DNA of 64,000 bases from Mytilus trossulus (Eukaryota), in assembly GCF_036588685.1 (NCBI RefSeq), contig NC_086378.1:82336001-82400000 (forward strand). Direction: 5' to 3'. A program made the translations under genes and the position numbers. This document shows, in pieces, positions 3,060 to 55,400 of this stretch. The notes beneath the pieces are model-generated. The model was not told where the DNA came from. It saw nothing but the letters and a program-made list of their open reading frames with translations, and made no database searches. Every line of letters begins with the position of its first letter. The stretch's first letter is position 1.

Positions 3060-6000
3060 ATGGCAGCTTCTAGGGCTCAGTAAGAACATTATTTTACTCA
3101 ATTGATATTAATTTCCTGAACGTATAAAATGAATTCCTTAGGAAAAATGATTTATTTTCTAATTCTGAAAATAATTGTGTTATAAAAAAAACATTTGTTT
3201 AGGCTGATATGTCATGATATGGTACATGTATCACAAAACACAATTGTTCAAATCAACAAATTATCGAAGAACAAATTCAAAAAATGTGATTGAATAAAAT
3301 TACTAATGCATAAAGATGCATGTTCAAAAATTTAAAAAAAAAATTATATATTTGAAGATCGAAGGCTTTCCTAAGTGATCAATCTTTAAAGGGAAGGTAT
3401 CAAAAAAGGGGCCTTGCATGTAAGGAGGGGTGGTAGAATTGAAAAGATAATTTAATTAGAATATTCACTTATGTTTACCCCCTTTGTTTTTAATTAGATA
3501 AAGTGGAATTTTTTTGTACATGTAGGTTAAACATGTTGAAAGACATTAGAAAAGTTATATTCAGGACAAAGTATTTTGTAAATTAAGACTATAAAACCAT
3601 AACTGTGTCTTGCATGCAATCTATCTGTTTATAAAGCTGTAAAATATCTAAGAGTTAATGTTAACAGTGTTATTCTTCGTCCACTATGTCGCTAACAGTA
3701 TATATATGTACATCCAAAGTACCCAACATTATACTTATCTTGGTGTAACTTTTAGTGCATCTGGCAGCTTTTCAGAAGCCAAAAACATGTTATATAAAAA
3801 AGGCTTCAAAGCATTCTTTAAATATACAAAATATTTTACTAATTATAAACCTAATATCTCCACTCTAATGCACATTTTTGATCACACAGTGAAACCTGTA
3901 TTATTATATGGTTCAGAAATATGGGGCTGTTTTAATTCTAAAAAGTTAAATAATGACACAGAACTTAATTATTTCTATAGATTATGTAAAGATCTAAAAA
4001 ATGAAAAAGTGCATCTAAAATTCTGCAGATTTACATTAGGAGTGAATAAGCACGCAACAAATTTAGCCATATTTGGCGAATTAGGTCGTTATCCTCTAAT
4101 GATAGATATTTTAACAAACATGATTAAATATTGGAAAAGAATTCATATTAAAAATAATATTTTATTAACAAATGCATACTCTCTCTCAAATACATTATCT
4201 AAAGCTGGGAAGAATTGTTGGGCTAGTAGTATTGATGCTATCTTAAAATTACTTGATTTAAAAGAGTATCAGGTGCTCTCATCTAAAATAAACATTAGAA
4301 ATATGGTGAAAAAGAAATTATATTTAAAGTATTGCAGCATATGGAAGAAAGAATTATTTAATGATAAAAGACAAAATAAGACCTCTGGAAATAAACTTAG
4401 AACTTATCGATTATTTAAACCAAATTTTAATTTTGAGCCTTACTTATTGAAATTACCATATATTCAAAGATGTGTTTTAACAAGATTTAGAATTGGAGCT
4501 CACAAACTTGAAATAGAAAAAGGTCGTTATTTTAATATTAAACTAGAAAATAGAATATGCAAACTCTGTAATGAGGAAATAGAAGATGAGATGCATTTTC
4601 TTTTAACATGTAAAACTCTGGATAATGTTAGAAATCCCTTTCTAAGCAAAATATATAGTAAAAATAAAAATATTTCAAAACTTGATAACAAATCTCTTTT
4701 TATTTGGCTAATGGGAAATGAAGATAAAAACATTTTGATAATAATTTGTCAGTTATTAGAGATTTTAAATATAAACAGAAATACAATATTAAATTAGATT
4801 TCTCTATATAAAATTATGTATGATCAAATATGCATTTACATAAGTTATTTCTTTTACATTTGATAAATTACTAGTATATACTACGAGGTGTGCTGTCCAA
4901 TAAAGGGACCAGAATAACAGACTATTGGTCATATTGTATAATATATGTTTATTATTTACAAATTGTCTACTTCATTTTCTTTAACATTATATCAATCAAC
5001 TAAATCAAAATCAATCATATTATGTACTTTGTTTAACCTATTTTGAATTTACTTTACATTATGTTTGAAAATTGTATTATAATTATTCTGCTCATTCTGG
5101 GCGCCGTGATTGGCAAATTAAATATTTGTTTGTTTGTTTGTTTTTGTGTACTTTTCATTTCAGACCAGCATTTTGTAGAGGTCCACATACACTCACTGTT
5201 CCAGCAGAATTATTTCAGGAGAACAGACAAAGGTTATGTGAAAGGTTAAAGGGTAAAGTTCCAACTGGTGCCATTGTATTGTTGCAGGGTGGAGAGTCGC
5301 AGACTAGATATTGTTCCGACCATGAACCTATATTTAGACAGGTAACATTATACTGTAACTCAATTTCCATGAAAATAAAAGAATCTATAGTATTAGGGAA
5401 CCATCTTATTTGCATATATATGCAGTGGTATACCTGTAGGAGAAAGTAAGCTTTGAATAAAATTTCTTCACTTGAAATTTGTAGCTTCATAATACATGTA
5501 TCAATTTCAGGAGTCACACATGTATTATATTGATTGCATGAAGTGCCATATTATTTTAATGATTTCTGTGAAATAAGTATTGAGAAAAATAACATGAATA
5601 AATAGTATGTTATTCATTTTAGAAATATAGCATATTTAAAGCACGATATGTAAAACTGCTTTTGTTTTGCCTATTGTTATTATAATATACAGTTATTCTT
5701 CAACAATGCAATCAATCTAAATAAAATGACAAACCCATTCATGCCATTAGGGTTAATATTTAAAGTGTTACCATGATATATGGTATAGACTTATAATTTA
5801 CATAACACCAAGTCTGAAAAAAATGTCACTTTCTTTTATTGGAGTGGTACAATTATGTTCTATTTTCCAGGAGTCCTACTTCCAATGGGCTTTTGGAGTA
5901 GAAGAACCTGATTTTTATGGTGCCATTGAGGTAGATACAGGAAATGCAATATTGTTTCCTCCCAAACTTCCAGATGCTTATGCTGTCTGGATGGGAAAGT

Positions 6001-9000
6001 AAGATATTTACAAAAGAGAACATAGTGTATACATTGTATTGCCCTTCAGTGAAATGTTAATACTGATTTTAAACGGCTTGATGACATCACTTGTGTGTGA
6101 CATCAATTAGATTGTACAATAACAGATGTTTTTCAAATAGAATTTGAAAAAGATCTTGTAGGAAAAAATACTTAAATTTGAAATACTTATGTGTTGCTTA
6201 GAATATTTTCTTGTTGGGGTAGATAAACATCTGTACAGTACAGTGCAGTACCAAATTTACAGTACTAAAATTACAGTGTAAGAAAAATATGATTTCCAAA
6301 TATTGAATGTCACTTCATCTTTTTAATTATTTAGAAACTTTGCTTTAATTTTGTAAAATTCAAAGATGGTCAAACACACTGCATGAACCTCAAAGTTGAT
6401 TACATTTAAGCCTTAAAATTGCTGATGACAGAATGTAGGAATAGTTTTTTTCTGGCTTTCACAACCATCAATGCAGGCAAGTCAGAAATCAAACAAGGAA
6501 AAACATGATCATGAATTGATAATGATGACATACTGTTAAAGATCATCTTTTTTTTTTTTTAATAACATATCTGAAAACAACGAAACAATACATTTTATTA
6601 ATGTAGATGCTGTTTGAAGTTTTTAAGGAACAAAATAACTATATTTTCAGGTTACTTTCATGTGAAGACTTTAAAGAGAGATATGGTGTAAATGAAGCTC
6701 ATTGGTCATCAGATGTAAGATAATATACAATTGTATTTTATTCTGCAACTTATGAGAAGAAAATTGTTAATTTGGGGCTCTGAAAACATTCAATCAATAG
6801 GGAAGAATAGACTTTTCATGAAATAATGAAATTAATTTAATAAGGAAAAAGTAAACAACAAATAAATTTGAAAGAATATAAATTATTTTCTTAGGATAAA
6901 AAATCATATAACCATTTTCTTATGAAAATAAAGATGATTTTTTTTTTAACCAAGACCCAAATCTCTTGGTCAATATATATCATGCATCCACAAAAAATAC
7001 ATTTTCCCCTAAATCTACAAAAAATGATACCCACAAAAATATATGAATCTACACTACACTGAAATTTTGTCCTTTTGTATCTTCTTTCCAATAAATTATT
7101 TTAAATAAATTGTTTATTGCTGTTTTATTTCAGATCCCTTCAGTATTGAAAGAAAGAAACCCAGCAGTCCTGTTAACATTGGTAAGTAAGTGTATAAAAC
7201 CCAGCAGTCCTGTTAACATTGGTAAGTAAGGGGAAGAAACCCAGCAGTCCTGTTAACATTGGTAAGTTGGTGTATAAAACCCAGCAGTCCTGTTAACATT
7301 GGTAAGTAAGGGGAAGAAACCCAGCAGTCCTGTTAACATTGGTAAGTTAGTGTATAAAACCCAGAAGTCCTGTCAACATTGGTAAGTTAGTGTATAAAAC
7401 ACAGCATTCCTGTTAACATTGGTAAGTAAGGGGAAGAAACCCAGCAGTCCTGTTAACATTGTTAAGTTAGTGTTTAATTTTAACGTTCACTGTTTGATTT
7501 TACTCTTTATTGAAAAATTTTAACAAATTGAAAAGTTTAAATCTGGTTAAACCATAAAGCTGAATACATTTGAGCTGCGTCAGATAGGAATGAACCTTGT
7601 CCAAGTGCAGGATACATGTAAATGTAAAAGGCTTTGATGAATTTTGGAACATTCACATATGAAATAAAAGATGCATTTGGTAGATATAGGAAGATGTGGT
7701 GTGAGTGCCAATGAGACAACTCTCCATTCAAATAACAATTTAAAAAATTAAACCATTATTATAAATGTACGGCCTTCACCACGAAGTCTTAAGTCTTAAT
7801 TTTTCTTTAGATTTTACCTACATTGATCTTTGATGGATAACAGTCTCATTTCAATTCAATGTGTGGCCTTCAACACGGAGCCTTGGCTCACAACGAACAA
7901 CAAGCTTTTGGTCTGTTTTGTAGGGTTTTTATAACAATTCATTTTCAAACAGTTACAGACTTTTCATAGTGATTTGTTCAACCCCTAATATAAAGTAAAC
8001 AGATGTATTGATATTCATTGGCATACGGTCGATCTGATCTATCTGACCCAGCTTATTTATTTTTTGATGATAAAATAAAAATGATATCTCCATATGATCA
8101 TGATGATACACTTTATTTAAATGGAAGATAAATGTAAAATATTATTTTCCAGAAAGGACTGAACACAGACAGTGGTAACTATAGCAGAGAAGCAGCATTT
8201 GATGGAATCAGTCAGTAAGTATAGTTCAGATTGTTTTGATATACCATTAAAATCATGATATCTAAATTTAAGTTTCTTTTCTTTATTTCCTGTGAAATAT
8301 TAAAATGTAAGTTCAGTAATATTCACCTTTGGTTTAATTTTGGAAGTTAAAGTTTACTCTTTTATTTTTAATAGGAAATTAATTTCATTTGAAAGGTTAT
8401 TTTTAAGCAATCTTTGGAAGTAATACCTATTGGAGAAGAAAAAAACTTATTAATTTTTTATGGCATCTTGGTCAAAAGCCAAGGTTACAATATTAGTTAA
8501 AGCTGATTGCATTGATTGTGTAGGTAAAGGTAATATCTTTGGTTATCTTGCTTGCTAGCTGAACCATGAAGTCATTATTAGGTTAGGTAAACTACTCTCC
8601 TTTAAGAGTAGACTAGTCTAAAAGATAACCAATGTTTCTATCTGTAGGATAAGGCTACTTTGAAAGGAGGGTAGTATACCTTACCTACTAATGACTTCAC
8701 GGTTCAGCTAGCAAGCAAGCTTACCAAAGATATTACCTTTACCTACACACTCAATGCAATCTGCTATAATACTGTAGGAACTCAAATATAAATCTGAAGT
8801 TTGGGAGTAAAATGATTGACTTGCACACATGACATTAGTTTTCAGCATACTATACACAAATCCTTATCAAAACTGCAATAACTCATTTCTTGTCTTCAAA
8901 TTTTGACAGATTGCAACTTGACATGGTTATTTTGTATTTTCAACATGTTTAATGGAAATTTTCTAAAGAAAATTTTTTAATGTTTCAGATTTAAAGTAGA

Positions 9001-12000: not shown

Positions 12001-15000
12001 ATCACTTTGATTTTAATTGTCCTTTGTCTTTTATTTTTTTAAATTTTGATTTCAGTTTATTCAAGCATTACTGTTATTTAACATGTGTAATGAGAGATGA
12101 AGCTTACACTTGTATTTGTTTTGACTTCTGATTTCAGTTTATTCAAGCATTACTGTTATTTTACGGGTGGAATGCGAGGTGAAGCTTACACTTGTATTTG
12201 TTTTGACTTCTGATTTCAGTTTATTCAAGCATTACTGTTATTTTACGGGTGGAATGCGAGGTGAAGCTTACACTTGTATTTGTGGAACGTAAGTATTTAT
12301 TGTTCACTGTTTACATTTCAGTCTGTTTAAACATTATTGTTATTTCACTGGTGGAACAAGAAATGGGGCATATGCTTGTGTTTGTGGATCGTAAGTACTA
12401 TGCACAATTACATATGCATGAAGATTTTCATTTAATACATTAGATTATTAGAGAACTGTGGAATCTTTAATATTCATTTGATACCAACGCTCATGGATTT
12501 CATGTGTAAAGGTAAATCACAAAAAAATTCAGTGACATACACATTTTCTATTGTTACTTATGCATATATACTTTGGCAAAAACATAAATCAAATATTTTT
12601 ACGAAAAATTGGTATCAACAAAAATAAAAGAAACTACAGTACTTCTTTTGAGTTTATATATCTTACCATCTTACAATCTATTCTCTTTCAAAAATAATAC
12701 TAAATTTTATAGTAATTGGCATTAGACTATAATGTGATTGATCGGGTCTCCTCTATACAAAAAGGTATATAAGTTAATTGGAAAGAATAGAATAATTGCC
12801 ATCTTCTCATTAAGTTTCCATAGTTGTAAAAACATTTTCCCATTAGATTGATTGATTGTTGGTTGCTTAACATCCAGTGGCAAATATTTCATGCATATTC
12901 AGGACGATTTTCCCATTAGAAGAAGAATAGTTATTTTATCTTGGCCATAAAATCACTTGAATGAAAATGTGATTGGGACACTCAAATAAATAGTCAGAAA
13001 GATGCATGTTCCTGTCAACTATAGAAGACTTGAGAAAAGGTATGAGGCAACGGGTTCTCTAGCAGGCGTTGATAATTATTCAAGGAACCTTTCTACTATT
13101 CTTTCAGTATAATTATCCTCAGAGAAATAACTGCATGGTTAGATCATAATGGTATATTTTCATTCTTCTACAATATTTAGTAGTCATTTTTAAGAGGCAA
13201 CTACTGTTCATCTGTTGTTAACAAATAGGCAGTGTGACAATTTTAAGTGTATATTTTCAGTGGAGACAATGGTTCTGTATTACATTATGGCCATGCAGGT
13301 GCCCCAAATAGTAAACTGGTGCAGGATGGTGATATGTGGTAAGTTGGTAATAAGACACAATTATATCTTTTTGCTACATAGGATTCTTCTAGCGCTGGAA
13401 TTGTTATACTTTTAAGGACTTTGTAAATGATAATTATTTCACACTTATTAGATTATTTCTTTTAAGATGTTCTTTTTTTCCTGTGGAATAATTGTTGCAG
13501 CTTGAAATTAAGAAATTGGTAAAAGTTGCAATATTTCAATACTTGTTTCTTTATGAGTTACATCTAAGTTTGTCATGCAAATTATACCACACTTGTAATT
13601 CAAAGTATCAGAAAACAGGGAGTAGATGTTTCTGTAGGTGTGTGACAGATTCAAATAGCATTCACACATAACAACTCATCACTGTTGACCTGAAAACCAA
13701 AAAAAATATGAAGTCATTCTGTTCTCTCATGCAAGTGTGATGAAAACTTTTGTTAGAAGAACAAATGGACCAATGGATATAGGGACAACATGATTGAGAT
13801 TTTTTTTTAGATTTCAGACAATGTTAATGAAAATACCTTTTTACTAATTAATTCCATGTTGATGTGTAGATTGAATTATTTTCCTTTCAGTTTATTTGAT
13901 ATGGGCTGTGAGTATTATTGCTACACATCAGATATCACATGTTCCTTCCCAGCCAATGGAAAGTTTACAGAGAGGCAAAAAGGAATATATGAAGCTGTGT
14001 ATAAATCTAGTAGGGCAGTAATGGCAGCTGTTAAACCAGGTACAGTCTCATCAAGTCATCTTGTGATTACTTAAGGATTTCTCATGTTTTTAGAATTTGA
14101 TAGTTGATTAGATATTAAAAAAAATCAAGAATTAATGTATTGTACAACAATGTAAAGCTTTTCCCATTTATTCCATCATTCAAGTTCTTGGATGAGTTAT
14201 TCCTTTTATTACATTGCCTTTTAATGCCAATAGGTAAAAAAACAAATAGAAGCACCTACATATTTTCAACACATTCTTACTTTATGTAGATGCAACTTCA
14301 TTGTCAACAACTATTGTTTTGTATAACAGATGTGAAATTACAGAATTTATTTCTCATGCGGAATATCAGTTCAAATGACTGGAAAATCACAATCTTTCAT
14401 GTACTGTCCTATAACAATGTTATTTTTTTAAGAGTAAAATAGAGTTAAGACGTATTTATACATCTTCTTCTGAGAACAATACAGATATCTATAAATTTGC
14501 TATTGTGTTTAGGTGTTTGTTGGGTTGACATGCACTTGCTGGCAGATAGAACACACCTAGAGGAATTGAAGAGACTTGGTCTGGTTACAGGAGATGTTGA
14601 TGAGATGATGAAAGTCAGACTTGGGGCTGTGTTCATGCCACATGGTCTGGGTCATTTTATGGGACTAGATACACATGATGTGGGAGGATACCCAGAGGTA
14701 TGGATTCAATTTTAAATGGGAGAATTAATAAATAGTTAATCTTTAATGGATGAGATAAGTGAATAAATATAGATTCCACAACTGCAACAAGTGTATTACA
14801 ATATTTCTCCACTCGAGAGAGTTAAATTTTAATATTTAAAGCGTGAGGCTTTCCAATCTTTTTAAATTATTAAGAATTAACTATTGAGAGGGAAGAAATA
14901 TCACAATACACAAATTACAGTGGTGGAATCTGTTTCCCTCCTAACATGCCTAAATTTTTATCCTTTTTTTTCAAAGATTTGAGGAAAGATGTGTACTTTT

Positions 15001-18000
15001 GATGTGACGTCATCAGGCATGGTCGCCTTTTTCATGACAATACAATAAGAAAATTCAGAAGAAAACAAGAAAACGTCACATGTTAATTTCAACCAATCAT
15101 TTGCAGAGAACTGATTTTTCAGTAGAGATGAGAAAAAAAATTCTCACACCGGTCTGGAATTGAGAAAATAGCACAAAAATTAGAGAAACTTACAAATACA
15201 ACTAGAATATTTTTACAGTGATAAATGTATCTCATAAAACTAATTAAATCTTATGAAATCATTAAGTCTTTGACAAGCAAATTAAATACCAGTCTATCAT
15301 TCTTATGATTTCAGGGCACTGAGAGAAGCAAAGAAGCAGGATTGAAATCCCTGAGAACAGTAAGAACTCTACAACAAAGAATGGTTCTCACCATTGAACC
15401 TGGAATATATTTTATTGATGTGGTGAGTTATTTATATATACTTTCTGGTAATGGTACTATATATGTAGATAAAGTGAGTGAGACAGAGAGCAAACAACTC
15501 AAAAACCAATGAGAGCAGTGGGATGCATAATGTTGTAACTTATTGATTTATCTCATCATGTGTCCTATCTTAATAGATTTATATCCAAAATAGTTTACAA
15601 GGGCGTTTATTTGCAAATTGCAAATGTTTACAGTTCATACTTAAAATCAAAAATCCTCTAATTGTCTGATTAGTTAAAGGGGAGGCATAAGGTCTTACAT
15701 TCTAATGATTTTTGTAAATTTTACATATTTGTATTGTTTAAAGTTGTTATTTGTTGTTTGTATTTAGTAGCAATCCATTTTACGGATTTTATACTCATAA
15801 AATATTATATCTGATAGGTGTACTAAGTGTAAACAGTACTACATTGTATTCATTTAATCACATAAAATAATTATTTGATTTATATTATTCCAGTTATTGG
15901 ATGCAGCTTTGAATAACCCTGAACAAGCCAAGTTTTTAGTACGTGAAAAGATTGACAGCCATCGAGGCTTTGGAGGGGTAAGCTAAATAATATCTTCAAT
16001 GCTAGGTCAAGGAAAAGTTCAAATATAATACCTTAAACAATAGCTAGAAGGTGTTGTATGAAGCTTCAATCTGTGTAGATGAAATATAGAAACATATTTA
16101 GTTTGCATTATTTTGCACTTGATTTTGTTTTAAAAACATTTTAAATGAGGCTTACAACCTGCCAATTATATAGAATATATGTGGTAAAATTGAACCTGTG
16201 TAAGCTACATTTTGAGATACATACTGTTAACTTATTTCTCCAAATCTTCGTCAATTTATCCCTTTCTGCATCCATTGAATAAAAAATTTAATCAACATGT
16301 GGTTCGTTTGATCTCAGTTCTTCATTGGTTAAAATTCGATTATGACGTCAAATTTTCTTGTTTTCCTCTTGATTTCCTATTGTGATGGCATGAAAAAAGG
16401 CAACCATGCCTGATGACTTCACATAGAAAGAACACATCTTTTTGCAGATCAGTCGCAAAGAAGGAATAAGTTTGCTGTGTATTGTTTGAAAAACATTAGA
16501 AAAAACAGATTCCACCACCAAATCTCGTGTAATACCATATTTAACCACTCTCGACAGTTAAATTTTAAATATTTAAACATTTAAACTGTCTCGTTTGGAT
16601 AAATATCGTATTACGCTCGATGCAGTGGTGGAATCTATAGTAATATTACTAATGATTGTTTTCCAGGTCAGAATAGAAGATGATATAGCCATAATTACTA
16701 ATGATTGTTTTCTAGGTCAGAATAGAAGATGATATAGCCATAATTACTAATGATTGTTTTCTAGGTCAGAATAGAAGATGATATAGCCATAATTACTAAT
16801 GATTGTTTTCTAGGTCAGAATAGAAGATGATATAGCCATAATTACTAATGATTGTTTTCTAGGTCAGAATAGAAGATGATATAGCCATAATTACTAATGA
16901 TTGTTTTCTAGGTCAGAATAGAAGATGATATAGCCATAATTACTAATGATTGTTTTCTAGGTCAGAATAGAAGATGATATAGCCATAATTACTAATGATT
17001 GTTTTCTAGGTCAGAATAGAAGATGATATAGCCATAATTACTAATAATTGTTTTCTAGGTCAGAATAGAAGATGATATAGCCATAATTACTAATGATTGT
17101 TTTCTAGGTCAGAATAGAAGATGATATAGCCATAATAACTAATGATTGTTTTCTAGGTCAGAATAGAAGATGATATAGCCATAATTACTAATAATTGTTT
17201 TCTAGGTCAGAATAGAAGATGATATAGCCATAATTACTAATGATTGTTTTCCAGGTCAGAATAGAAGATGATATAGCCATAATTACTAATGATTGTTTTC
17301 TAGGTCAGAATAGAAGATGATATAGCCATAATTACTAATGATTGTTTTTCAGGTCAGAATAGAAGATGATATAGCCATAATTACTAATAATTGTTTTCTA
17401 GGTCAGAATAGAAGATGATATAGCCATAATAACTAATGATTGTTTTCTAGGTCAGAATAGAAGATGATATAGCCATAATTACTAATGATTGTTTTCTAGG
17501 TCAGAATAGAAGATGATATAGCCATAATTACTAATGATTGTTTTCTAGGTCAGAATAGAAGATGATATAGCCATAATTACTAATGATTGTTTTCTAGGTC
17601 AGAATAGAAGATGATATAGCCATAATTACTAATGATTGTTTTCTAGGTCAGAATAGAAGATGATATAGCCATAATTACTAATGATTGTTTTCTAGGTCAG
17701 AATAGAAGATGATATAGCCATAATTACTAATGATTGTTTTCTAGGTCAGAATAGAAGATGATATAGCCATAATTACTAATAATTGTTTTCTAGGTCAGAA
17801 TAGAAGATGATATAGCCATAATTACTAATGATTGTTTTCTAGGTCAGAATAGAAGATGATATAGCCATAATAACTAATGATTGTTTTCTAGGTCAGAATA
17901 GAAGATGATATAGCCATAATTACTAATAATTGTTTTCTAGGTCAGAATAGAAGATGATATAGCCATAATTACTAATGATTGTTTTCCAGGTCAGAATAGA

Positions 18001-21000
18001 AGATGATATAGCCATAATTACTAATGATTGTTTTCTAGGTCAGAATAGAAGATGATATAGCCATAATTACTAATGATTGTTTTTCAGGTCAGAATAGAAG
18101 ATGATATAGCCATAATTACTAATAATTGTTTTCTAGGTCAGAATAGAAGATGATATAGCCATAATAACTAATGATTGTTTTCTAGGTCAGAATAGAAGAT
18201 GATATAGCCATAATTACTGATGATTGTTTTTCAGGTCAGAATAGAAGATGATATAGCCATAATTACTAATAATTGTTTTCTAGGTCAGAATAGAAGATGA
18301 TATAGCCATAATTACTAATGATAGTTTTCTAGGTCAGAATAGAAGATGATATAGCCATAATTACTAATAATTGTTTTCCAGGTCAGAATAGAAGATGATA
18401 TAGCCATAATTACTTATGATTGTTTTCCAGGTCAGAATAGAAGATGATATAGCCATAATTACTAATAATTGTTTTCTAGGTCAGAATAGAAGATGATATA
18501 GCCATAATTACTAATGATTGTTTTCTAGGTCAGAATAGAAGATGATATAGCCATAATTACTAATGATTGTTTTCTAGGTCAGAATAGAAGATGATATAGC
18601 CATAATTACTAATGATTGTTTTCTAGGTCAGAATAGAAGATGATATAGCCATAATTACTAATAATTGTTTTCTAGGTCAGAATAGAAGATGATATAGCCA
18701 TAATAACTAATGATTGTTTTCTAGGTCAGAATAGAAGATGATATAGCCATAATTACTAATGATTGTTTTCTAGGTCAGAATAGAAGATGATATAGCCATA
18801 ATTACTAATGATTGTTTTTCAGGTCAGAATAGAAGATGATATAGCCATAATTACTAATAATTGTTTTCTAGGTCAGAATAGAAGATGATATAGCCATAAT
18901 AACTAATGATTGTTTTCTAGGTCAGAATAGAAGATGATATAGCCATAATTACTGATGATTGTTTTTCAGGTCAGAATAGAAGATGATATAGCCATAATTA
19001 CTAATAATTGTTTTCTAGGTCAGAATAGAAGATGATATAGCCATAATTACTAATGATAGTTTTCTAGGTCAGAATAGAAGATGATATAGCCATAATAACT
19101 AATGATTGTTTTCCAGGTCAGAATAGAAGATGATATAGCCATAATTACTAATGATTGTTTTCTAGGTCAGAATAGAAGATGATATAGCCATAATAACTAA
19201 TGATTGTTTTCTAGGTCAGAATAGAAGATAATATAGCCATAATTACTTATGATTGTTTTCTAGGTCAGAATAGAAGATAATATAGCCATAATTACTAATG
19301 ATTGTTTTCCAGGTCAGAATAGAAGATGATATAGCCATAATTACTAATAATTGTTTTCTAGGTCAGAATAGAAGATGATATAGCCATAATTACTAATGAT
19401 TGTTTTCCAGGTCAGAATAGAAGATGATATAGCCATAATTACTAATAATTGTTTTCCAGGTCAGAATAGAAGATGATATAGCCATAATTACTTATGATTG
19501 TTTTCCAGGTCAGAATAGAAGATGATATAGCCATAATTACTAATAATTGTTTTCTAGGTCAGAATAGAAGATGATATAGCCATAATTACTAATAATTGTT
19601 TTTCAGGTCAGAATAGAAGATGATATAGCCATAATTACTAATGATTGTTTTCCAGGTCAGAACAGAAGATGATATAGCCATTATTACTAATGATTGTTTT
19701 CCAGGTCAGAATAGAAGATGATATAGCCATAATTACTAATGATTGTTTTCTAGGTCAGAATAGAAGATGATATAGCCATAATTACTAATGATTGTTTTTC
19801 AGGTCAGAATAGAAGATGATATAGCCATAATTACTAATGATTGTTTTCTAGGTCAGAATAGAAGATGATATAGCCATAATTACTAATGATTGTTTTCTAG
19901 GTCAGAATAGAAGATGATATAGCCATAATTACTAATGATTGTTTTCCAGGTCAGAATAGAAGATGATATAGCCATAATTACTAATGATTGTTTTCTAGGT
20001 CAGAATAGAAGATGATATAGCCATAATTACTAATGATTGTTTTTCAGGTCAGAATAGAAGATGATATAGCCATAATTACTAATGATTGTTTTCTAGGTCA
20101 GAATAGAAGATGATATAGCCATAATTACTAATGATTGCAGAGCTCCAGATAAGCTGCGTATTTGCGTGATCACGCAATTCAAATAATAGAAAACCCAATG
20201 CAATTGCCCATTGCAGGGTATAATAACCCAATTAATTCAAAGGAAAACCCAATTATATACCAAAACCATGAGTTCTCAACCCTTTTGTTGGCTACCGTTT
20301 GCGTTATTTACCCTTATCTGTTTTCACTTGTTGCGTAATCTATTTTTATTATATTTATAATTGGAAATGTCCTTTCGTTCTTAAAATAGATTCCTGCATA
20401 TCAAGTAGCTGAAATGGGTCCCTGTTGGCATTTTCCCTTGCTCAAAAGGTACACGTGGTTTTGAAATCATTTCGATCTTCTCGGCGTTTATCCGATTAGC
20501 GTGCGTCATATTGTCATATTTTTTTTCGAATTGCTCGAGATTTATCAAAACATACATTGAATTAAAACGAAAGTGAATGTCCGATAAAAATATTGAATAG
20601 AAGCATGTTTTCAGCTTCTTTTGCATAGCTGAGGGAAAGATATGATGATAACAACACTCAGCCAGTGTTTTTAGGAAGCGTCCGTCGAACGCATGGGCGT
20701 GTTTGCGTACCTCAACGAGAACATAATTTGCTAATAAACACAGGACTTCGTCAAAAACTGAATCAGTTGCCGTTAGAAAATGTGAAAGGCCAAATCAATT
20801 ATGAAATGATATGTAATTGGAAACCAAAAGTTCTAATAAGGGATGAATTAACCCAGATTTATGTAAATTGAATAAAACAAAAACATTCAAGTATATACTA
20901 TTTTTTTTTTTCGTTTTCACGGTTAATGAGTGAATACACACACAGGTACTCCTCTCAGAATTTTTAAATAAAGGTATATAAGAGAAAAAAAGATTTGAGA

Positions 21001-24000
21001 CGAGTGCTTGGGAATGCACATATCCGTTATATACAGTTTACATTATAAGTTGTGAGAAATTACAAAACTGGCAGAAGGTTAAAAACGGGACACAAATGAA
21101 ACCTACAATTGCTCGTCAGTGACTTAAGAAAATAAAACAGCTATAGCACATATTATTCAAAGAAAGAAACATACTTAAGATGGAAAAACATCCGGGGTTG
21201 ATATTGCCTAAATATTCAATAGTGTGTTGATGAAAAAACCCAATACACTAAGGAGCTTGGTGGTGAAAAACCCAATTTGATATTTACTTGAGGGGTGAAT
21301 TGGAATTGATAATGCAATTGAAAATCTTTATCACCCAATTACATAAGAAAATGGTGGGTAAAAACCCCAATTTGTGAATTCTTATCTGGAGCTCTGTGAT
21401 TGTTTTCTAGGTCAGAATAGAAGATGATATAGCCATAATTACTAATGATTGTTTTCTAGGTCAGAATAGAAGATGATATAGCCATAATTACTAATGATTG
21501 TTTTCTAGGTCAGAATAGAAGATGATATAGCCATAATTACTAATGATTGTTTTCCAGGTCAGAATAGAAGATGATATAGCCATAATTACTAATGATTGTT
21601 TTCTAGGTAAGAATAGAAGATGATATAGCCATAATTACTAATGATTGTTTTCCAGGTCAGAATAGAAGATGATATAGCCATAATTACTAATGATTGTTTT
21701 TCAGGTCAGAATAGAAGATGATATAGCCATAATTACTAATGATTGTTTTCTAGGTAAGAATAGAAGATGATATAGCCATAATTACTAATGATTGTTTTTC
21801 AGGTCAGAATAGAAGATGATATAGCCATAATTACTAATGATTGTTTTCCAGGTCAGAATAGAAGATGATATAGCCATAATTACTAATGATTGTTTTTCAG
21901 GTCAGAATAGAAGATGATATAGCCATAATAACTAATGATTGTTTTCTAGGTCAGAATAGAAGATGATATAGCCATAATAACTAATGATAGTTTTCCAGGT
22001 CAGAATAGAAGATGATATAGCCATAATTACTAATGATTGTTTTCCAGGTCAGAATAGAAGATGATATAGCCATAATTACTAATGATTGTTTTCCAGGTCA
22101 GAATAGAAGATGATATAGCCATAATTACTAATGATTGTTTTCCAGGTCAGAATAGAAGATGATATAGCCATAATTACTTATGATTGTTTTCTAGGTCAGA
22201 ATAGAAGATGATATAGCCATAATTACTAATGATTGTTTTCCAGGTCAGAATAGAAGATGATATAGCCATAATTACTAATGATTGTTTTCCAGGTCAGAAT
22301 TGAAGATGATATAGCCATAATTACTAATAATTGTTTTCTAGGTCAGAATAGAAGAGGATATAGCCATAATTACTAATGATTGTTTTTCAGGTCAGAATAG
22401 AAGATGATATAGCCATAATTACTAATGATTGTTTTCCAGGTCAGAATTGAAGATGATATAGCCATAATTACTAATAATTGTTTTCTAGGTCAGAATAGAA
22501 GAGGATATAGCCATAATTACTAATGATTGTTTTTCAGGTCAGAATAGAAGATGATATAGCCATAATTACTAATAATTGTTTTCTAGGTCAGAATAGAAGA
22601 TAATATAGCCATAATTACTAATGATTGTTTTTTCAGGTCATAATAGAAGATGATATAGCCATAATTACTAATAATTGTTTTCTAGGTCAGAATAGAAGAT
22701 GATATAGCCATAATTACTAATGATTGTTTTCTAGGTCAGAATAGAAGATGATATAGCCATAATTACTAATGATTGTTTTTCAGGTCAGAATAGAAGATGA
22801 TATAGCCATAATTACTAATGATTGTTTTCTAGGTCAGAATAGAAGATGATATAGCCATAATAACTAATGATTGTTTTCTAGGTCAGAATAGAAGATGATA
22901 TAGCCATAATTACTAATAATTGTTTTCTAGGTCAGAATAGAAGATGATATAGCCATAATTACTAATGATTGTTTTCTAGGTCAGAATAGAAGATGATATA
23001 GCCATAATAACTAATGATTGTTTTCTAGGTCAGAATAGAAGATGATATAGCCATAATAACTAATGATTGTTTTCCAGGTCAGAATAGAAGATGATATAGC
23101 CATAATTACTAATAATTGTTTTCTAGGTCAGAATAGAAGATGATATAGCCATAATTACTAATGATTGTTTTCTAGGTCAGAATAGAAGATGAAATAGCCA
23201 TAATTACTAATGATTGTTTTTCAGGTCAGAATAGAAGAAGATGATATAGCCATAATTACTAATGATTGTTTTCTAGGTCAGAATAGAAGAAGATGATATA
23301 GCCATAATTACTAATGATTGTTTTCTAGGTCAGAATAGAAGATGATATAGCCATAATTACTAATGATTGTTTTTTCTAGGTCAGAATAGAAGATGATGAT
23401 ATAGCCATAATTACTAATAATTGTTTTCTAGGTCAGAATAGAAGATGATATAGCCATAATTACTAATGATTGTTTTCTAGGTCAGAATAGAAGATGATAT
23501 AGCCATAATTACTAATGATTGTTTTTTCAGGTCATAATAGAAGATGATATAGCCATAATTACTAATAATTGTTTTCTAGGTCAGAATAGAAGATGATATA
23601 GCCATAATTACTAATGATTGTTTTCCAGGTCAGAATAGAAGATGATATAGCCATAATTACTAATGATTGTTTTTCAGGTCAGAATAGAAGATGATATAGC
23701 CATAATTACTAATAATTGTTTTCTAGGTCAGAATAGAAGATGATATAGCCATAATTACTAATGATTGTTTTCCAGGTCAGAATAGAAGATGATATAGCCA
23801 TAATTACTCATGATTGTTTTCTAGGTCAGAATAGAAGATGATATAGCCATAATTACTAATGATTGTTTTTCAGGTCAGAATAGAAGATGATATAGCCATA
23901 ATTACTAATAATTGTTTTCTAGGTCAGAATAGAAGATGATATAGCCATAATTACTAATAATTGTTTTCTAGGTCAGAATAGAAGATGATATAGCCATAAT

Positions 24001-25686
24001 TACTAATGATTGTTTTCCAGGTCAGAATAGAAGATGATATAGCCATAATTACTAATGATTGTTTTCCAGGTCAGAATAGAAGATGATATAGCCATAATTA
24101 CTAATGATTGTTTTTCAGGTCAGAATAGAAGATGATATAGCCATAATTACTAATGATTGTTTTCCAGGTCAGAATAGAAGATGATATAGCTATAATAACT
24201 AATGATTGTTTTCTAGGTCAGAATAGAAGATGATATAGCCATAATTACTAATAATTGTTTTTCAGGTCAGAATAGAAGATGATATAGCCATAATTACTTA
24301 TGATTGTTTTCCAGGTCAGAATAGAAGATGATATAGCCATAATTACTAATAATTGTTTTCTAGGTCAGAATAGAAGATGATATAGCCATAATAACTAATG
24401 ATTGTTTTTCAGGTCAGAATAGAAGATGATATAGCCATAATTACTAATGATTGTTTTCTAGGTCAGAATAGAAGATGATATAGCCATAATTACTAATGAT
24501 TGTTTTCTAGGTCAGAATAGAAGATGATATAGCCATAATTACTAATGATTGTTTTCCAGGTCAGAATAGAAGATGATATAGCCATAATTACTTATGATTG
24601 TTTTCTAGGTCAGAATAGAAGATGATATAGCCATAATAACTAATGATTGTTTTCTAGGTCAGAATAGAAGATGATATAGCCATAATTACTAATGATTGTT
24701 TTTCAGGTCAGAATAGAAGATGATATAGCCATAATTACTAATGATTGTTTTCCAGGTCAGAATAGAAGATGATATAGCCATAATTACTAATGATTGTTTT
24801 CTAGGTCAGAATAGAAGATGATATAGCCATAATTACTAATAATTGTTTTCTAGGTCAGAATAGAAGATGATATAGCCATAATAACTAATGATTGTTTTCT
24901 AGGTCAGAATAGAAGATGATATAGCCATAATTACTAATGATTGTTTTTCAGGTCAGAATAGAAGATGATATAGCCATAATTACTAATAATTGTTTTCCAG
25001 GTCAGAATAGAAGATGATATAGCCATAATTACTAATGATTGTTTTTCAGGTCAGAATAAAAGATGATATAGCCATAATTACTAATGATTGTTTTCCAGGT
25101 CAGAATAGAAGATGATATAGCCATAATTACTAATGATTGTTTTCCAGGTCAGAATAAAAGATGATATAGCCATAATTACTAATGATTGTTTTCCAGGTCA
25201 GAATAGAATATGATATAGCCATAATTACTAATGATTGTTTTCTAGGTCAGAATAGAAGATGATATAGCCATAATTACTAATGATTGTTTTCTAGGTCAGA
25301 ATAGAAGATGATATAGCCATAATTACTAATGATTGTTTTTCAGGTCAGAATAGAAGATGATATAGCCATAATTACTAATAATTGTTTTCCAGGTCAGAAT
25401 AGAAGATGATATAGCCATAATTACTAATGATTGTTTTCCAGGTCAGAATAGAAGATGATATAGCCATAATTACTAATAATTGTTTTTCAAGTCAGAATAG
25501 AAGATGATATAGCCATAATTACTAATAATTGTTTTCCAGGTCAGAATAGAAGATGATATAGCCATAACTGAGAATGGAATGGAACTTATGACATGTGTTC
25601 CTAGAACTGTGGAAGAGATCGAGAGATTAATGGAGGAGGGTAGGAAACAACCACCAATACCTCTCCCACAGGACATGAAAAAGTGA
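3060..25686 (+). CDS. PEPD: Xaa-Pro dipeptidase (prolidase, M24B). Exons 3060-3079, 5164-5341, 5871-5998, 6651-6714, 7134-7181, 8153-8214, 8989-9033, 9521-9596, 10403-10449, [12220-12288 or 12322-12390], 13261-13338, 13891-14039, 14513-14697, 15315-15422, 15894-15977, 25540-25686
   Basis: Spliced ORF is in phase across all GT-AG junctions. Prolidase motifs [13 protein letters not shown] and [10 protein letters not shown], plus all five metal-ligand motifs: LFDMG, SDIT, PHGLGH, TIEPG, GGVRIEDD. C-terminal [11 protein letters not shown]; AATAAA near 25730. Confidence 0.96.
3710..5140 (+). mobile_element. 5'-truncated non-LTR retrotransposon (LINE ORF2 C-terminus, 3'UTR, (TTTG)n tail) in PEPD intron 1
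   Basis: ORF 3658-4797 has [44 protein letters not shown] and CKLC...[14 protein letters not shown] repeat tail at 5125-5140. 5' boundary is approximate. Confidence 0.85.
7157..7470 (+). repeat. 40-bp tandem array x8 containing the PEPD exon 5 3' end and splice donor
   Basis: Unit AAACCCAGCAGTCCTGTTAACATTG|GTAAGT-N9. Donors at 7182, 7222, 7262, 7302, 7342, 7382, 7422; the last copy is mutated. Confidence 0.95.
8491..8773. mobile_element. Foldback MITE (~280 bp imperfect palindrome)
   Basis: GATTGCATTGA..TGTAGGTAAAGGTAATATCTTTGGT..CTTGCTAGCTGAACC is mirrored by GGTTCAGCTAGCAAG..ACCAAAGATATTACCTTTACCTACA..TCAATGCAATC. Confidence 0.8.
12047..12282 (+). repeat. 82-bp tandem array x3 containing the acceptor and most of PEPD exon 10a
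   Basis: TGATTTCAG|TTTATTCAAGCATTACTG... begins at 12056, 12138 and 12220. Only the last copy has the GTAAGT donor. Confidence 0.93.
12220..12288 (+). CDS. PEPD: PEPD exon 10a, (S)[22 protein letters not shown](T)
   Basis: 69 nt, ttcag|...|gtaagt, phase 2-2, fits exons 9 and 11. Confidence 0.85.
12322..12390 (+). CDS. PEPD: PEPD exon 10b, (S)[22 protein letters not shown](S), putative mutually exclusive alternative
   Basis: 69 nt, ttcag|...|gtaagt, same phase as 10a, many synonymous differences from 10a. Confidence 0.8.
14770..15190 (+). repeat. Interspersed repeat with terminal hairpin (AGATTCCAC...GTGGAATCT), copy 1
   Basis: Reverse-complement match to 16230-16638; shared core GTCATCAGGCATGGT.GCCTTTTTCATG. 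Confidence 0.7.
16230..16638 (-). repeat. Interspersed repeat with terminal hairpin, copy 2, inverted relative to copy 1
   Basis: CATGAAAAAAGGCAACCATGCCTGATGAC core; hairpin at 16508-16637. Ends just before the 49-bp array. Confidence 0.7.
16645..25567 (+). repeat. 49-bp minisatellite, ~156 copies, made of the PEPD last-exon acceptor plus the first 28 nt of the exon
   Basis: Unit TTACTAATGATTGTTTTCTAG|GTCAGAATAGAAGATGATATAGCCATAA. First junction at 16666/7, last (true exon) at 25539/40. (8873-1265)/49 is about 155 intervals. Confidence 0.98.
20138..21396. mobile_element. Non-autonomous TIR DNA transposon (hAT-like, 6-bp TSD) inserted in the 49-bp array
   Basis: Perfect 16-bp TIR CAGAGCTCCAGATAAG...CTTATCTGGAGCTCTG; TSD TGATTG at 20132-20137 and 21397-21402; subterminal ACCCAAT repeats; no long ORF. 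Confidence 0.9.
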
Positions 25687-27449
25687 TTTACAAAGAACTT
25701 TATATACCAGACTGTCTCAAACAGACACTAAATAAACATGTCAAACATGTAGTCCCTAGTCAGTTTTTTTAGGGGGTATGGGTTGCTACACATTTTAAAT
25801 GTATAATGACTAATATAAAATAAATTATAACCAACAGTATTGACCAAATAACTAGGAAATCATGTTTACATTCATGTTTTTTCCATTGTTAATTAACTGT
25901 TTGTAATATCAAGACCAAAATAATACAATCTTTGTTCAGTCATTGAAAATCAGTAAGTTAACATTCCAAAATTAGGGTATTATTTTGATAAATGCTAGTT
26001 GATAGAACATTTTTCTATCTAATATGTCATGATAATTTCATTTAGGATTTTTTTCAGCTTTTAGACAAGTCATCTATAAAATTATTATATATACTATATA
26101 TATATCCAAGATAATGTTAGGCTGTGAAAGTATTCAGTTTCTACTAACTATATCTGATTTTAAACATAATATGTATCTTTCAGTCATAATTATTTTTATT
26201 CAATTACATTTTGCAATTGAATGCACATAACCATATATACAATATGAATAGTATGAAGAGTGTGTGATAAAATCCTTCCACACTCCAACATTTTTAAAGT
26301 ACCAATATTTTAGGATTTTCTTGTGGTTAACTCAATAAAAAATGATGATATAAAAAGAAAAAACATTTATATATTACTCGCCATATATGTAAACCACTGA
26401 ATTAAAAATTGTGGAAATTGTACACTTCTGGACTAGAAAATTATAAAATGCCTACATGTAATACAATGATAATGTGAATTGATGTATGTAAATTATTATA
26501 AAACATCTCAAGTGCCATATTAAAGTATTATTTTCAGTATAATCATCATAATATTTTTTATATTAAGATCCTCCTCACTGTGATATTCAAATAAATATTT
26601 CATCATTGGTGTATTCTTATTCATATTAAACAAAGATACTTGTGTACAAATTGGAAATAAGTATGGCGTTCATTATCACTGAACTAGTATATATTTATTT
26701 ACGGGCCAGCTTTAGGATGCCTCTGGGTGCGAGAATTTCTCGCTACATTGAAGACCTGTTGGTGACCTTCTGCTGTTGTTTTTTTCTATGGTCAGGTTGT
26801 TGTCTCTTTGACACATTCTCAATTTTATTGTTCATCTCCTGTATTAATAATTCTCTCCAAGTACCTGCTAGTTTTTTTGAACAACCCTCAGGTGTCCTGG
26901 GTAAAACTATATGTTTGTTCATCATATCTAGCTATAATATATGACAGTTGCAAGAAATTTGACATGACCCTTCTTTTCTGAATCTGCTTATGGTATACTT
27001 TAGGTTGAAAGTAATATGATAAATTCAAACCAAGAGTTCCAAGTGGTGCAGTTGGAAGTCTACCTCCTAAAATGTTAAGGATGCCACCTACATTATTTTG
27101 ACCCTTATGGAATATCTGTTTCATAGAGAATGACAGATATTTTCCAATTGTTGTAATCACTAACCCATCCTCTTTTCTTTGAAAGTGACCTATTAAATTA
27201 TACCATATCAATGTGTAATGAGCAACACAATGGGTACCACAAATGGACCAGTATTTGCTTACCATTCTGGAGCACCTGAGATCAACTACAGATTTAAGTG
27301 GAGTTCCTGTCGCACAGTCTCTGGTTTTCTATGTTGTGTTGTGTGGTCTCTTTTGTCTTTTGTCTTTTGTTGAGATTTTTTGCCATGTCATTTTTGAATA
27401 ATTAGGATTATATAATGCTTAAAAGTAATTGGAAAACAGACCAAAACAC

Positions 27450-52400: not shown

Positions 52401-55400
52401 GAAGAGCATCAAATAATGATAATATTTATAGTGCTGCAATGTCCAGACAAAAAATATTAACTAATAAATTAATTACTTTTCTGTCTTTTTTTAATATTTA
52501 TTTTAATAGTGGTAAAATTCAATCCAACTTGACATTTAAAATTCAATCATTTTCCTACATGTTTTCCCCTTTGTAGTACCCCAGTATTTAACACGATGTA
52601 CAGTGTCAAATAAAATTTATATATCTGATATCATACTTATTCATTTAAAAATATACTTATTTAAATTATCACTTTTAAATATCAGGAAACTTTGTTAAAC
52701 TGAATGCTAATTTAAAATAATATCTGTAAAGCGTCATTAAATATGATGTTGTTCAGTACACGCTTACATATTTGACCTCGTTACCTGATCACCTTTGTGT
52801 ACCTTGTTATGCATCATTAGTTCTATTGATAAAGAGACAAGCTAAGGACACCTCGTCAAAGGTAACAAACCTGTAATCAGTGAATGATTTATGGCTTCAA
52901 TATAACTTATTGAAGGGATAATTGTTTGACAGCTTGTTGTTATTTAAATAAAAGAAAACATGTTTTTTCTACTTTTTATTGATGTACACAAGCTAAAGAC
53001 CAAGCCGTACATTTATGTTCCCAGAGAATTAGACTAACTGAGACACTTCAAAGAATCTTAAATATGCTGCATCTGTTGTAATAAACCCAATTATGACCGA
53101 AATATCTTTCTGAAATAGTATGCCCAAGCGGACATGTCCAAAACCCAAACGGACATTTTTAATGATCGAAAGTTGTTCAAAATTGAAATGACCGTTTTAT
53201 GAAAAATGTCTTGAAAAAAATAATTCTATTAGACCGTTTGAGGCTGAGAGCAGCCGGTCTTTTTATAAAAGTTCCGGTCATGTCCGGAATATATGACCGT
53301 TTTGGAAGCCTTGGTTTCTATAGAGAAAAAAAATATATACAAGTCATATCTTAGATTTGAAAATGAAAAACATTGTTAATAAAAATGCCACAAAATTATA
53401 ATTATTTTAATATAACAAGCAATTTTTGTGGTACAACCTGACATTTAAAAAAAATTATCTTGTTTTTAAATTCAAAGGGAGACAATTCATGTCCTTAGAG
53501 CAGAGTATCCTGAGTAAAATAAGAATCTGCATTGATAATTTAATGAATTGCTTTTATCTATTTTGAATTTATTGAACCATAAAACTAATTTTTGACTCTT
53601 TACATTGAATAATCTGCGAAGCGGATTATGTAAAATGATATTACTCATATAAGACATCTTTCTGGTATACATCATCTGCCTTCATATCACATGGAATCAG
53701 TAGATCTGGATGGGAGTCATAATGTACAAATACAATGTCCTCAACAGGGAGGTGTTTACTGCCAATACCTCTATGGATGAATGGTACGACCTGAAATGTA
53801 CAAATACAATGTCCTCAACAGGGAGGTGCTTACTGCCTATACCTCTATGGATGAATGGTACAAACTGAAATGTACAAATACAATGTCCTCACTAGGGAGG
53901 TGTTTACTGCCAATACCTCTATGGATGAATCATGAATGGTACGACCTGAAATATACAAATACAATGTCCTCAATAGGAAGGTGCTTACTGCCAATACCTC
54001 TATGGATGAATGGAACGACCTGAAATGTACAAATACAATGTCCTCAATAGGGAGGTGTTTACTGCCAATACCTCTATGGATGAATGGTACGACCTGAAAA
54101 ATACAAATACAATGTCCTCAACAGGGAGGTGCTTACTGCCAATACCTCTATGGATGAATGGAACGACCTGAAATGTACAAATACAATGTCCTCAATAGGG
54201 AGGTGTTTACTGCCAATACCTCTATGGATGAATGGTAAAAAAAATTGGAAAAAAATCATCAAAGATCTTCCATTGTCTTCATAATATTTTAATTTCATGT
54301 GTTTTTCATGTTTGATATATATATTTCTTGTCTCATGTTTGGCTGCCTGCTTTGTGTTTGCCCTTATTCATTTTCCATGTTTCTTCAATGCAAAAAATTT
54401 CACTGCTTACAGTTTTCACTGTTGATTTTTTATTCACGTGTGTACTCAAATTTTAAAATCAAATGTTTTCAGGTATCTTATTTTTTTTGTCAAGGCTTAC
54501 TACAAACTTTTACTGTTTCCGATTATTTTGTGATTTTTGTATGTAAAAAAAAATGGTGTCATATGTTATCTTTAAACTGGACCCCTGTTGTGTTCACTTA
54601 TCGCTACACTGACAACAAGTATGGCCTAAATCCCGTGGTCAGAAATCTGACCACGGGATTTAATAATTCGACGAGACTAGTACATCATGAGCTATGTTTA
54701 ATTATGTATTATACTGATAGAAATCAAAGAAAAATTAGCACATTTATTACCCTACTGAGTTCTTAAGGGAACAAAAGATACCGGCTCAGTTTGTCAAGAA
54801 CGTGTTAACACGCTCGTTGGTCATTTATCTGTGCTACTACCGTAGGGTTGATTAACAGATCCTTGGAACAGTAGACGGACAGGGCCTAAAATAAAATATT
54901 GTTTGTTTCCCTAATCTAGTGATGCATATTTTTTACATTTAATAAATAAGGCTAAACCGTTCAATTTTATTTAATGTGTTCTAATGTCTTTTAAAGTGAC
55001 TTTGAATACGTTTTAAATTTGTCAAGTTGTTATAAGTGTTGTAGTTGGTCCAAATATAGAAACCAATAAACACATCACAATATACGTGTGTGAAATTAAT
55101 CTAAACCAGTGATAAATGGATGATACAAAATACATATGACATATGAAAACATATGACATATTAAAACGGGAAATGAGGTCTAGCGTGACCCGGGAACTGC
55201 CAAATAATGAGAATTGCTAACATATACATTATTTTTATAAGCGGGATACAGGAATCTGACAAAACAGTAACATGAGTAAGGGGGATCTGGGATCGGAACC
55301 CCCCCAATGAGACCCGCTACATAATTCATAAATTTGACAGTGAGATGTAAAAATCTTAGTAGATAAAATCCCTAACAAAAGAAACAAAATCGGAAACGTT

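Follow-up and report, generated by a model that had tools for sequence, protein, structure and literature searches.

The last intron of the prolidase gene PEPD in the bivalve Mytilus trossulus contained a tandem array whose 49-bp unit copied the 3' splice site of that same intron together with the beginning of the terminal exon. The array was located in a 64,000-nt stretch of contig NC_086378.1 (positions 82,336,001 to 82,400,000, forward strand, assembly GCF_036588685.1), hereafter the window, near 82.3 Mb in an assembly of 1.3 Gb with 31% G+C. Positions are those of the window, and features of the last intron and of its two flanking exons are given on the plus strand. We considered it probable that the array was a junction-spanning ('mirage') minisatellite that was tolerated by its host gene and most likely functionless, with upstream copies that were essentially silent.

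A copied 3' splice site in the last intron of PEPD

The terminal exon (25540-25683) aligned to residues 449-487 of human prolidase (E 7e-9), and the stop-free segments upstream of it, searched exon by exon, matched AMP_N and then Peptidase_M24 in colinear order. Judged by its sequence, the PEPD gene is predicted to be intact and colinear. The penultimate exon (15894-15977) ended with GGAGGG and was followed by the donor GTAAGC at 15978-15983. The coding part of the terminal exon (25540-25686) comprised 48 codons and a TGA stop codon at 25684-25686. The last intron (15978-25539) amounted to about 690 nt without the array and a transposon inserted in it. The assembly contained neither a second PEPD 3' end nor an array-free haplotig.

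Tandem Repeats Finder (TRF) reported a single 49-bp array at 16645-25567, and tiling resolved it into 71 units, one split unit, and 84 further units. Thus, there were 156 units in total, with the genuine copy (25518-25566) preceded by 155 decoys, and 150 of the 155 unsplit units were exactly 49 nt long. This agreed with an earlier annotation made from the letters of the DNA (the sequence-only reading), which had placed about 155 decoy acceptors in 8.9 kb of the last PEPD intron. The span coordinates behind the 8.9 kb were correct, but this figure did not hold as the length of the array because 1.26 kb of the span was the transposon; the net array was 7,658 bp. Similarly, the TRF copy figure of 182 was the span divided by the period and counted the 1259-bp insertion too. 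The left block (16645-20137) contained 71 units and the first 14 nt of the split unit. The right block (21397-25517), which was more heterogeneous, contained the rest of the split unit and 83 decoys.

Each unit combined 22 nt of the intron end with the first 27 nt of the terminal exon; read directly, these two parts were ATTACTAATGATTGTTTTCTAG and GTCAGAATAGAAGATGATATAGCCATA. The intron part carried TACTAAT, a short pyrimidine tract, and AG. The exon part encoded VRIEDDIAI, and its Glu aligned to E452 of human prolidase, which is a metal ligand. The 49-bp unit with these signals, YAG, and nine codons had been described in the sequence-only reading, and both tiling and direct reading reproduced it. 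The prediction that the final copy alone ran on to the stop codon was also correct: only unit 156 (25518-25566) continued into the rest of the exon (ACTGAG and onward). The intron half of this last unit (ATTACTAATAATTGTTTTCCAG, 25518-25539) was the genuine 3' splice-site module, with the transcript join at 25539/25540. When the whole 1.3-Gb assembly was searched, the 49-bp unit matched no other locus. A dispersed satellite that merely resembled the exon was therefore ruled out, since the unit was confined to the PEPD locus.

Transcripts across the last intron

Part of the region 25540-26000 was present in twenty public runs from 11 studies. Four runs (X1, X12, X20, and X4) were compared with 25420-26500; three of them were RNA or guessed to be RNA, and X4 was labelled 'DNA?'. 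All run records were assembled (Logan) contigs, from which rare isoforms are dropped. A 1511-nt contig from the PacBio transcript library X20 aligned from 25539 to 25690, that is, past 25567 and into the unique exon. Its loose end (AAAGATTGACAGCCATCGAGGCTTTGGAGG) had a unique match to 15947-15976 at the end of the penultimate exon. Together, the loose end and the aligned part indicated the canonical join of 15977 to 25540. Long-read transcripts of the PEPD 3' end had been named in the sequence-only reading as a way to check it, and this contig carried the canonical join.

The X1 contigs began 7 nt before 25539. Contigs of X1, X12, and X20 covered 25539-26500; thus, the terminal exon was at least 960 nt long, and its 3' untranslated region (UTR; 25687-26500) extended at least to 26500. 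No contig of X1, X12, X20, or X4 covered 25420-25538, where the units next to the exon were located. Decoy-joined or intermediate contigs were not seen in the four runs, although contigs cannot exclude rare forms.

Transcript and DNA contigs of other individuals were 1-5% diverged from the window in 25540-26500 and had several 3' UTR indels, and one run contained two haplotypes. The species is highly polymorphic. Contigs with zero differences from the window came from X4 only, which was probably a DNA run. Both allelic contigs of X4 stopped at 25543 because of a single-nucleotide polymorphism (SNP) at 25573. No run in the read search contained more than 54% of the searched words, and none of the four runs compared had a contig on the array units. 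Metagenome scans were blank for the unit-unit junction and for the genuine exon alike, and the blank for the junction was thus uninformative.

Variation among units and turnover of the array

The splice signals were retained throughout the array. The acceptor tetranucleotide was CTAG in 90 of the 156 units, CCAG in 39, TCAG in 26, and TCAA in one. Thus, AG was kept in 155 units, all with the YAG whose preservation had been noticed before. TACTAAT was intact in 130 units and was replaced by AACTAAT in 17 more, which gave about 147 intact CTAAT branch motifs per pre-mRNA. The sequence after AG was GTCAGA in 152 units and GTAAGA in two; the latter were decoys with a strong donor-like start, at 21585-21633 and 21732-21780. 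The sole unit without AG (TCAA/GTCAGA, 25469-25517) was the decoy that immediately preceded the genuine acceptor. A general rule that the decoy nearest to the real site is always disabled held here and failed in an 82-bp acceptor array and a 40-bp donor array of the same gene, which are described below.

As the sequence-only reading had stated, the variation was mostly intronic: between-unit diversity was 6.7% in the 22 nt of intron versus 0.78% in the 27 nt of exon. The variant sites that were common, five in number (unit positions 3, 7, 10, 19, and 20), all fell in the intron part, and the exon half had rare variants only. In two decoys, at 25055 and 25153, a G-to-A change created an AATAAA motif in the exon-derived half.

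The units comprised 33 different variants, and the order of these was non-periodic. A block of 15 units was duplicated exactly, with units 3-17 (16743-17477) identical to units 18-32 (17478-18212), 735 bp each. The variant make-up differed between the left and the right blocks (chi-square p 0.013). CCAG was kept in both the first and the last units, and the interior was mostly CTAG. A concerted interior that leaves out the edge units corresponds to minisatellite-type turnover. The sequence-only reading had placed the unit boundary at a microhomology between ATAACTGA and ATTACTAA. These had 6 of 8 matches but were offset by 3 nt from the repeat boundary, and the proposal was dropped; in register, the shared stretch was only 1 nt.

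Transposon and dispersed repeat in the last intron

The insertion within the split unit, which the sequence-only reading had missed, was a 1259-bp non-autonomous DNA transposon with terminal inverted repeats (20138-21396). It began with CAGAGCTCCAGATAAG and finished with CTTATCTGGAGCTCTG, and 6 bp of the unit (TGATTG) were duplicated beside it at 21397-21402. Excising the transposon together with one duplicate restored a perfect 49-nt unit. Three other copies of this transposon had 7-bp target-site duplications. Of 499 first-look candidates for the family, 40 were scored, with 44 matches scored; the best other copies among these were 98% identical. This would fit a young family and a recent insertion, later than the array. 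A clean insertion with a target-site duplication in one unit argued that the array was real DNA and gave it a relative age. The transposon also contained AATAAA four times in sense orientation relative to PEPD.

The non-repeated 5' part of the last intron was 667 nt long (15978-16644). An own-genome search and a four-copy alignment placed a dispersed repeat of roughly 410 bp in it (16235-16644), abutting unit 1 within a few bases. This repeat had at least 3134 first-look candidates in the genome, at 83-90% identity. It contained an internal palindrome with arms of about 65 bp and ended about 27 nt from the ancestral acceptor. Seeding of the array by a transposon end was considered and rejected since two sister arrays in PEPD were not abutted by repeats. 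The adjacency of the repeat to unit 1 was probably a coincidence.

Sister junction arrays and neighbouring features

PEPD had three junction arrays within the window, one on the donor side and two on the acceptor side. The donor-side array (7157-7477) consisted of eight 40-bp copies in which the last 25 nt of a 48-nt exon (end NPAVLLTL) were joined to GTAAGT. Seven of its donors were intact, the last one was broken (GTTAAGT), and a 120-bp higher-order period was visible. The second acceptor-side array (12028-12283) consisted of three 82-bp copies with 29 nt of intron and 53 nt of exon, the first copy being degenerate; its junction was AG/TTTATT, with no GT after AG. A diverged full duplicate of this exon with its own GTAAGT followed the 82-bp array at 12321-12391, so that the whole feature spanned 12028-12397, and the exon and its duplicate may be a mutually exclusive pair.

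Two further features were observed in the window. A 381-codon open frame within a PEPD intron (3652-4794) resembled the C-terminal part of a protein of non-LTR (long terminal repeat) retrotransposons. In a putative neighbouring gene, a 74-bp array of 6.9 copies (53721-54237) had a unit that apparently held a candidate mini-exon flanked by AG and GT.

Origin of the array and choice of the acceptor

The PEPD array had several properties of a mirage. Its unit joined the border of an exon of the host gene to the neighbouring end of the intron, and the genuine copy lay at the margin of the array, where it ran on into the remainder of the exon. The canonical join was found in the X20 contig and a decoy join was unseen, in contigs that were 1-5% diverged from the window and lacked rare forms. 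We propose that the array began with the tandem duplication of a 49-bp segment astride the 3' splice site of this intron. Slippage or unequal exchange may then have amplified this segment to 156 units, with ordinary minisatellite turnover and higher-order blocks, and the transposon would have landed in the array after amplification. Since only the copy at the exon-side edge was contiguous with the rest of the exon, only this copy can yield prolidase mRNA. The other 155 copies would then stay essentially silent in mRNA production. The array was probably a length-variable by-product of a repeat-forming tendency at exon edges.

The sequence-only reading had pointed out that 155 equivalent acceptors must be bypassed upstream of the genuine one, and the canonical mRNA supported this, again with the divergence of 1-5% between the contigs and the window. 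The decoys and the genuine site were identical over at least -49 to +27; therefore, discriminating information can be located only downstream of +27. It is likely that commitment to the 3' splice site would need exon sequence beyond +27, through exon definition and exon-proximal choice. Terminal-exon definition from the poly(A) site, which had been suggested for this role, would not suffice: the poly(A) site was at least 960 nt from the acceptor and thus cannot alone resolve steps of 49 nt. In the decoy-spliced frame, translation of the sequence gave 21 codons and then a stop. Rare decoy-spliced RNAs would accordingly be terminated early and lost. We also considered an RNA structure that masks the decoys and leaves the real site accessible. 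This idea was rejected because three units folded no better than shuffled sequences (z -1.24), and the hairpin between the pyrimidine tract and the purine stretch formed at the genuine site as well.

Several observations weighed against a tolerated and silent minisatellite. If p is the chance that any given decoy is used, the canonical yield is (1-p)^155, and to reach 90%, p must stay under about 0.07% per decoy; this puts a strong demand on discrimination from the exon side. The diversity of the exon half was 8.6-fold lower than that of the intron half, which was unexplained by pure neutrality, and the intronic position of all five common variants had a p of about 0.02 by position. The only loss of AG adjoined the genuine site, a 1-in-155 placement that was noticed post hoc. 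The low exon-half diversity and the lone AG loss could each be due to chance, or each could be a sign of competition between near decoys and the genuine site. Moreover, the RNA contigs may stem from alleles without the array, given their divergence, and low-level use of decoys was compatible with the Logan contigs because they drop rare forms. Finally, the length of the array rested on one assembly.

Recursive splicing, which the sequence-only reading had offered as another way past the decoys, would make the array self-correcting: each decoy that was used would regenerate a donor (GGG/GTCAGA), and all paths would converge on the canonical mRNA. The AG was directly followed by GT in the units (152 with GTCAGA and two with GTAAGA), and the regenerated site differed from the authentic donor GGG/GTAAGC at +3 and +6 only. 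Such a process would explain how 155 competent sites were tolerated and perhaps also the low variation of the exon half. However, a consensus matrix placed GGG/GTCAGA about 4 bits below the authentic donor. Metazoan donors rarely have C at +3, and known ratchet points use sites of the GTRAGT type; the strong regenerated donor AG/GTRAGT was not what these units offered, as 152 of 156 had AG/GTCAGA. Besides, the sister array at 12028-12283 (AG/TTTATT) cannot recurse and is nevertheless tolerated, so tolerance of such arrays needs no recursion. Intermediate contigs were unseen too, though contigs cannot exclude them. We therefore disfavoured recursion and regarded it as unlikely.

Equally improbable, in our opinion, was that the haplotype with the array is hypomorphic or mis-spliced, so that the first competent decoys are used, yielding truncated or unstable RNA, and the canonical mRNAs come from other alleles of a highly polymorphic population. 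It drew on the fact that every RNA contig was 1-5% diverged, with zero-difference contigs in X4 ('DNA?') alone, and first-come-first-served splicing would make the use of decoys plausible. In experiments with duplicated sites, the proximal copy was used in one study and the opposite was found in another (PMC1557585). On the other side, the assembly held no other PEPD 3' end, and amphioxus mirages leave splicing undisturbed (PMC3087553).

There was only a slim chance that the array, although real, had been inflated in length or rearranged in order by the assembler. In favour of such an artefact were the exact tandem duplication of 735 bp in the left block and the fact that no contig of the DNA-like run X4 covered the units. 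Nevertheless, the 33 unit variants in non-periodic order, the heterogeneous right block, and the transposon with its target-site duplication inside the array all spoke for genuine DNA. The stop of the X4 contigs at 25543 was explained by the SNP at 25573, and none of them ran left into single-copy intron.

A functional array, acting as a sink for SF1, U2AF, or SR proteins, as a timer of terminal-exon splicing, or as a local concentrator of 3' splice-site factors, was very improbable: about 147 CTAAT motifs and 155 pyrimidine-tract-plus-AG modules per pre-mRNA and the well-kept exon half could be cited for it, but conservation evidence was absent, arrays of this kind are prone to length instability (PMC3087553), a transposon sat in the array, the RNA fold was not distinctive (z -1.2), and the intron of one gene is a small and short-lived pool of sites. 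Titration of these proteins by the intron RNA, raised in the sequence-only reading, was pure speculation.

Comparison with known systems

The PEPD unit was similar to the recursive splice sites of long introns in that a 3' splice site was located directly before GT. In contrast to ratchet points, its sequence was GTCAGA rather than GTRAGT, and there were 156 sites with a spacing of 49 nt. In addition, stepwise removal was unneeded for an ancestral intron as short as about 690 nt.

A second comparison was provided by intron 7 of the human F7 gene, where a 37-bp variable number tandem repeat (VNTR) starts on the exon 7 donor and produces five to nine identical donors (PMC1557585). Only the exon-proximal donor is used there, and the pseudo-sites were functional when tested (PMC1557585). 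Both in F7 and in PEPD, the edge element of a minisatellite spanned an exon boundary and the pseudo-sites were identical; the exon-proximal copy, which is chosen in F7 over silent but competent pseudo-sites, is probably also the one chosen in PEPD. In F7, however, the pseudo-donors lie downstream of the real donor, and a 5'-to-3' scan or a first-come rule picks the right copy. In PEPD, 155 acceptors lay upstream of the real one, and the same rules would pick the wrong copy.

The closest likeness was to the mirages of amphioxus. The mirage of Adh3 was reportedly first described by Canestro et al. in 2002. Amphioxus mirages are tandem repeats that span an intron-exon boundary and are found in globin genes (at both boundaries), Adh3, PGBD5, and TnC (PMC3087553, PMC3902484). 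Their AG/GT signals are kept, their length varies between haplotypes, and their splicing is regular by RT-PCR (reverse transcription PCR; PMC3087553, PMC3902484). Like the mirages of the globins BflGb6/BflGb9, Adh3, PGBD5, and TnC, the PEPD array had a boundary-spanning unit with most AG/GT kept, a genuine copy at the edge, and a concerted interior from which the edge units were left out. Several arrays per gene or genome were present in both cases; regular mRNA is made in amphioxus and was seen for PEPD in contigs 1-5% diverged from the window. The PEPD array differed from the amphioxus mirages in its molluscan host, in its size (155 decoys and 7.7 kb versus 3-6 units for the globins), and in the transposon that it contained. 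The array was not unprecedented but belonged to a described class (PMC3087553, PMC3902484), which has a donor-side counterpart in the F7 VNTR (PMC1557585). In the literature, we found nothing on acceptor-side VNTRs outside amphioxus or on junction arrays in bivalves, and the PEPD array was the largest acceptor-side junction minisatellite for which a description was found.

A bolder reading, which we considered doubtful, is that the exon-intron junctions of this hyper-polymorphic bivalve may, like those of amphioxus, seed minisatellites preferentially, and that the last acceptor is told apart or recursion rescues the wrong choices. If this were true, there would be a junction-targeted duplication, for example by template switching during repair synthesis where the exon homology of haplotypes ends abruptly at diverged introns. 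Among 156 acceptors that are identical from -49 to +27, the last one would then be distinguished more than 1000-fold by the downstream exon alone, or else wrong choices would be rescued by recursion at AG/GTCAGA. The feature that lets the last copy win, or corrects the wrong choices, must reside either in exon sequence past +27 or in a second round of splicing. Along with its sister arrays in PEPD, the array prompts one to ask why minisatellites are seeded at exon edges in certain highly polymorphic marine invertebrates. By itself, the PEPD array was a curiosity in a housekeeping peptidase gene, with value as a natural experiment on acceptor choice. It is a very large example of the class described in amphioxus and not a new kind.

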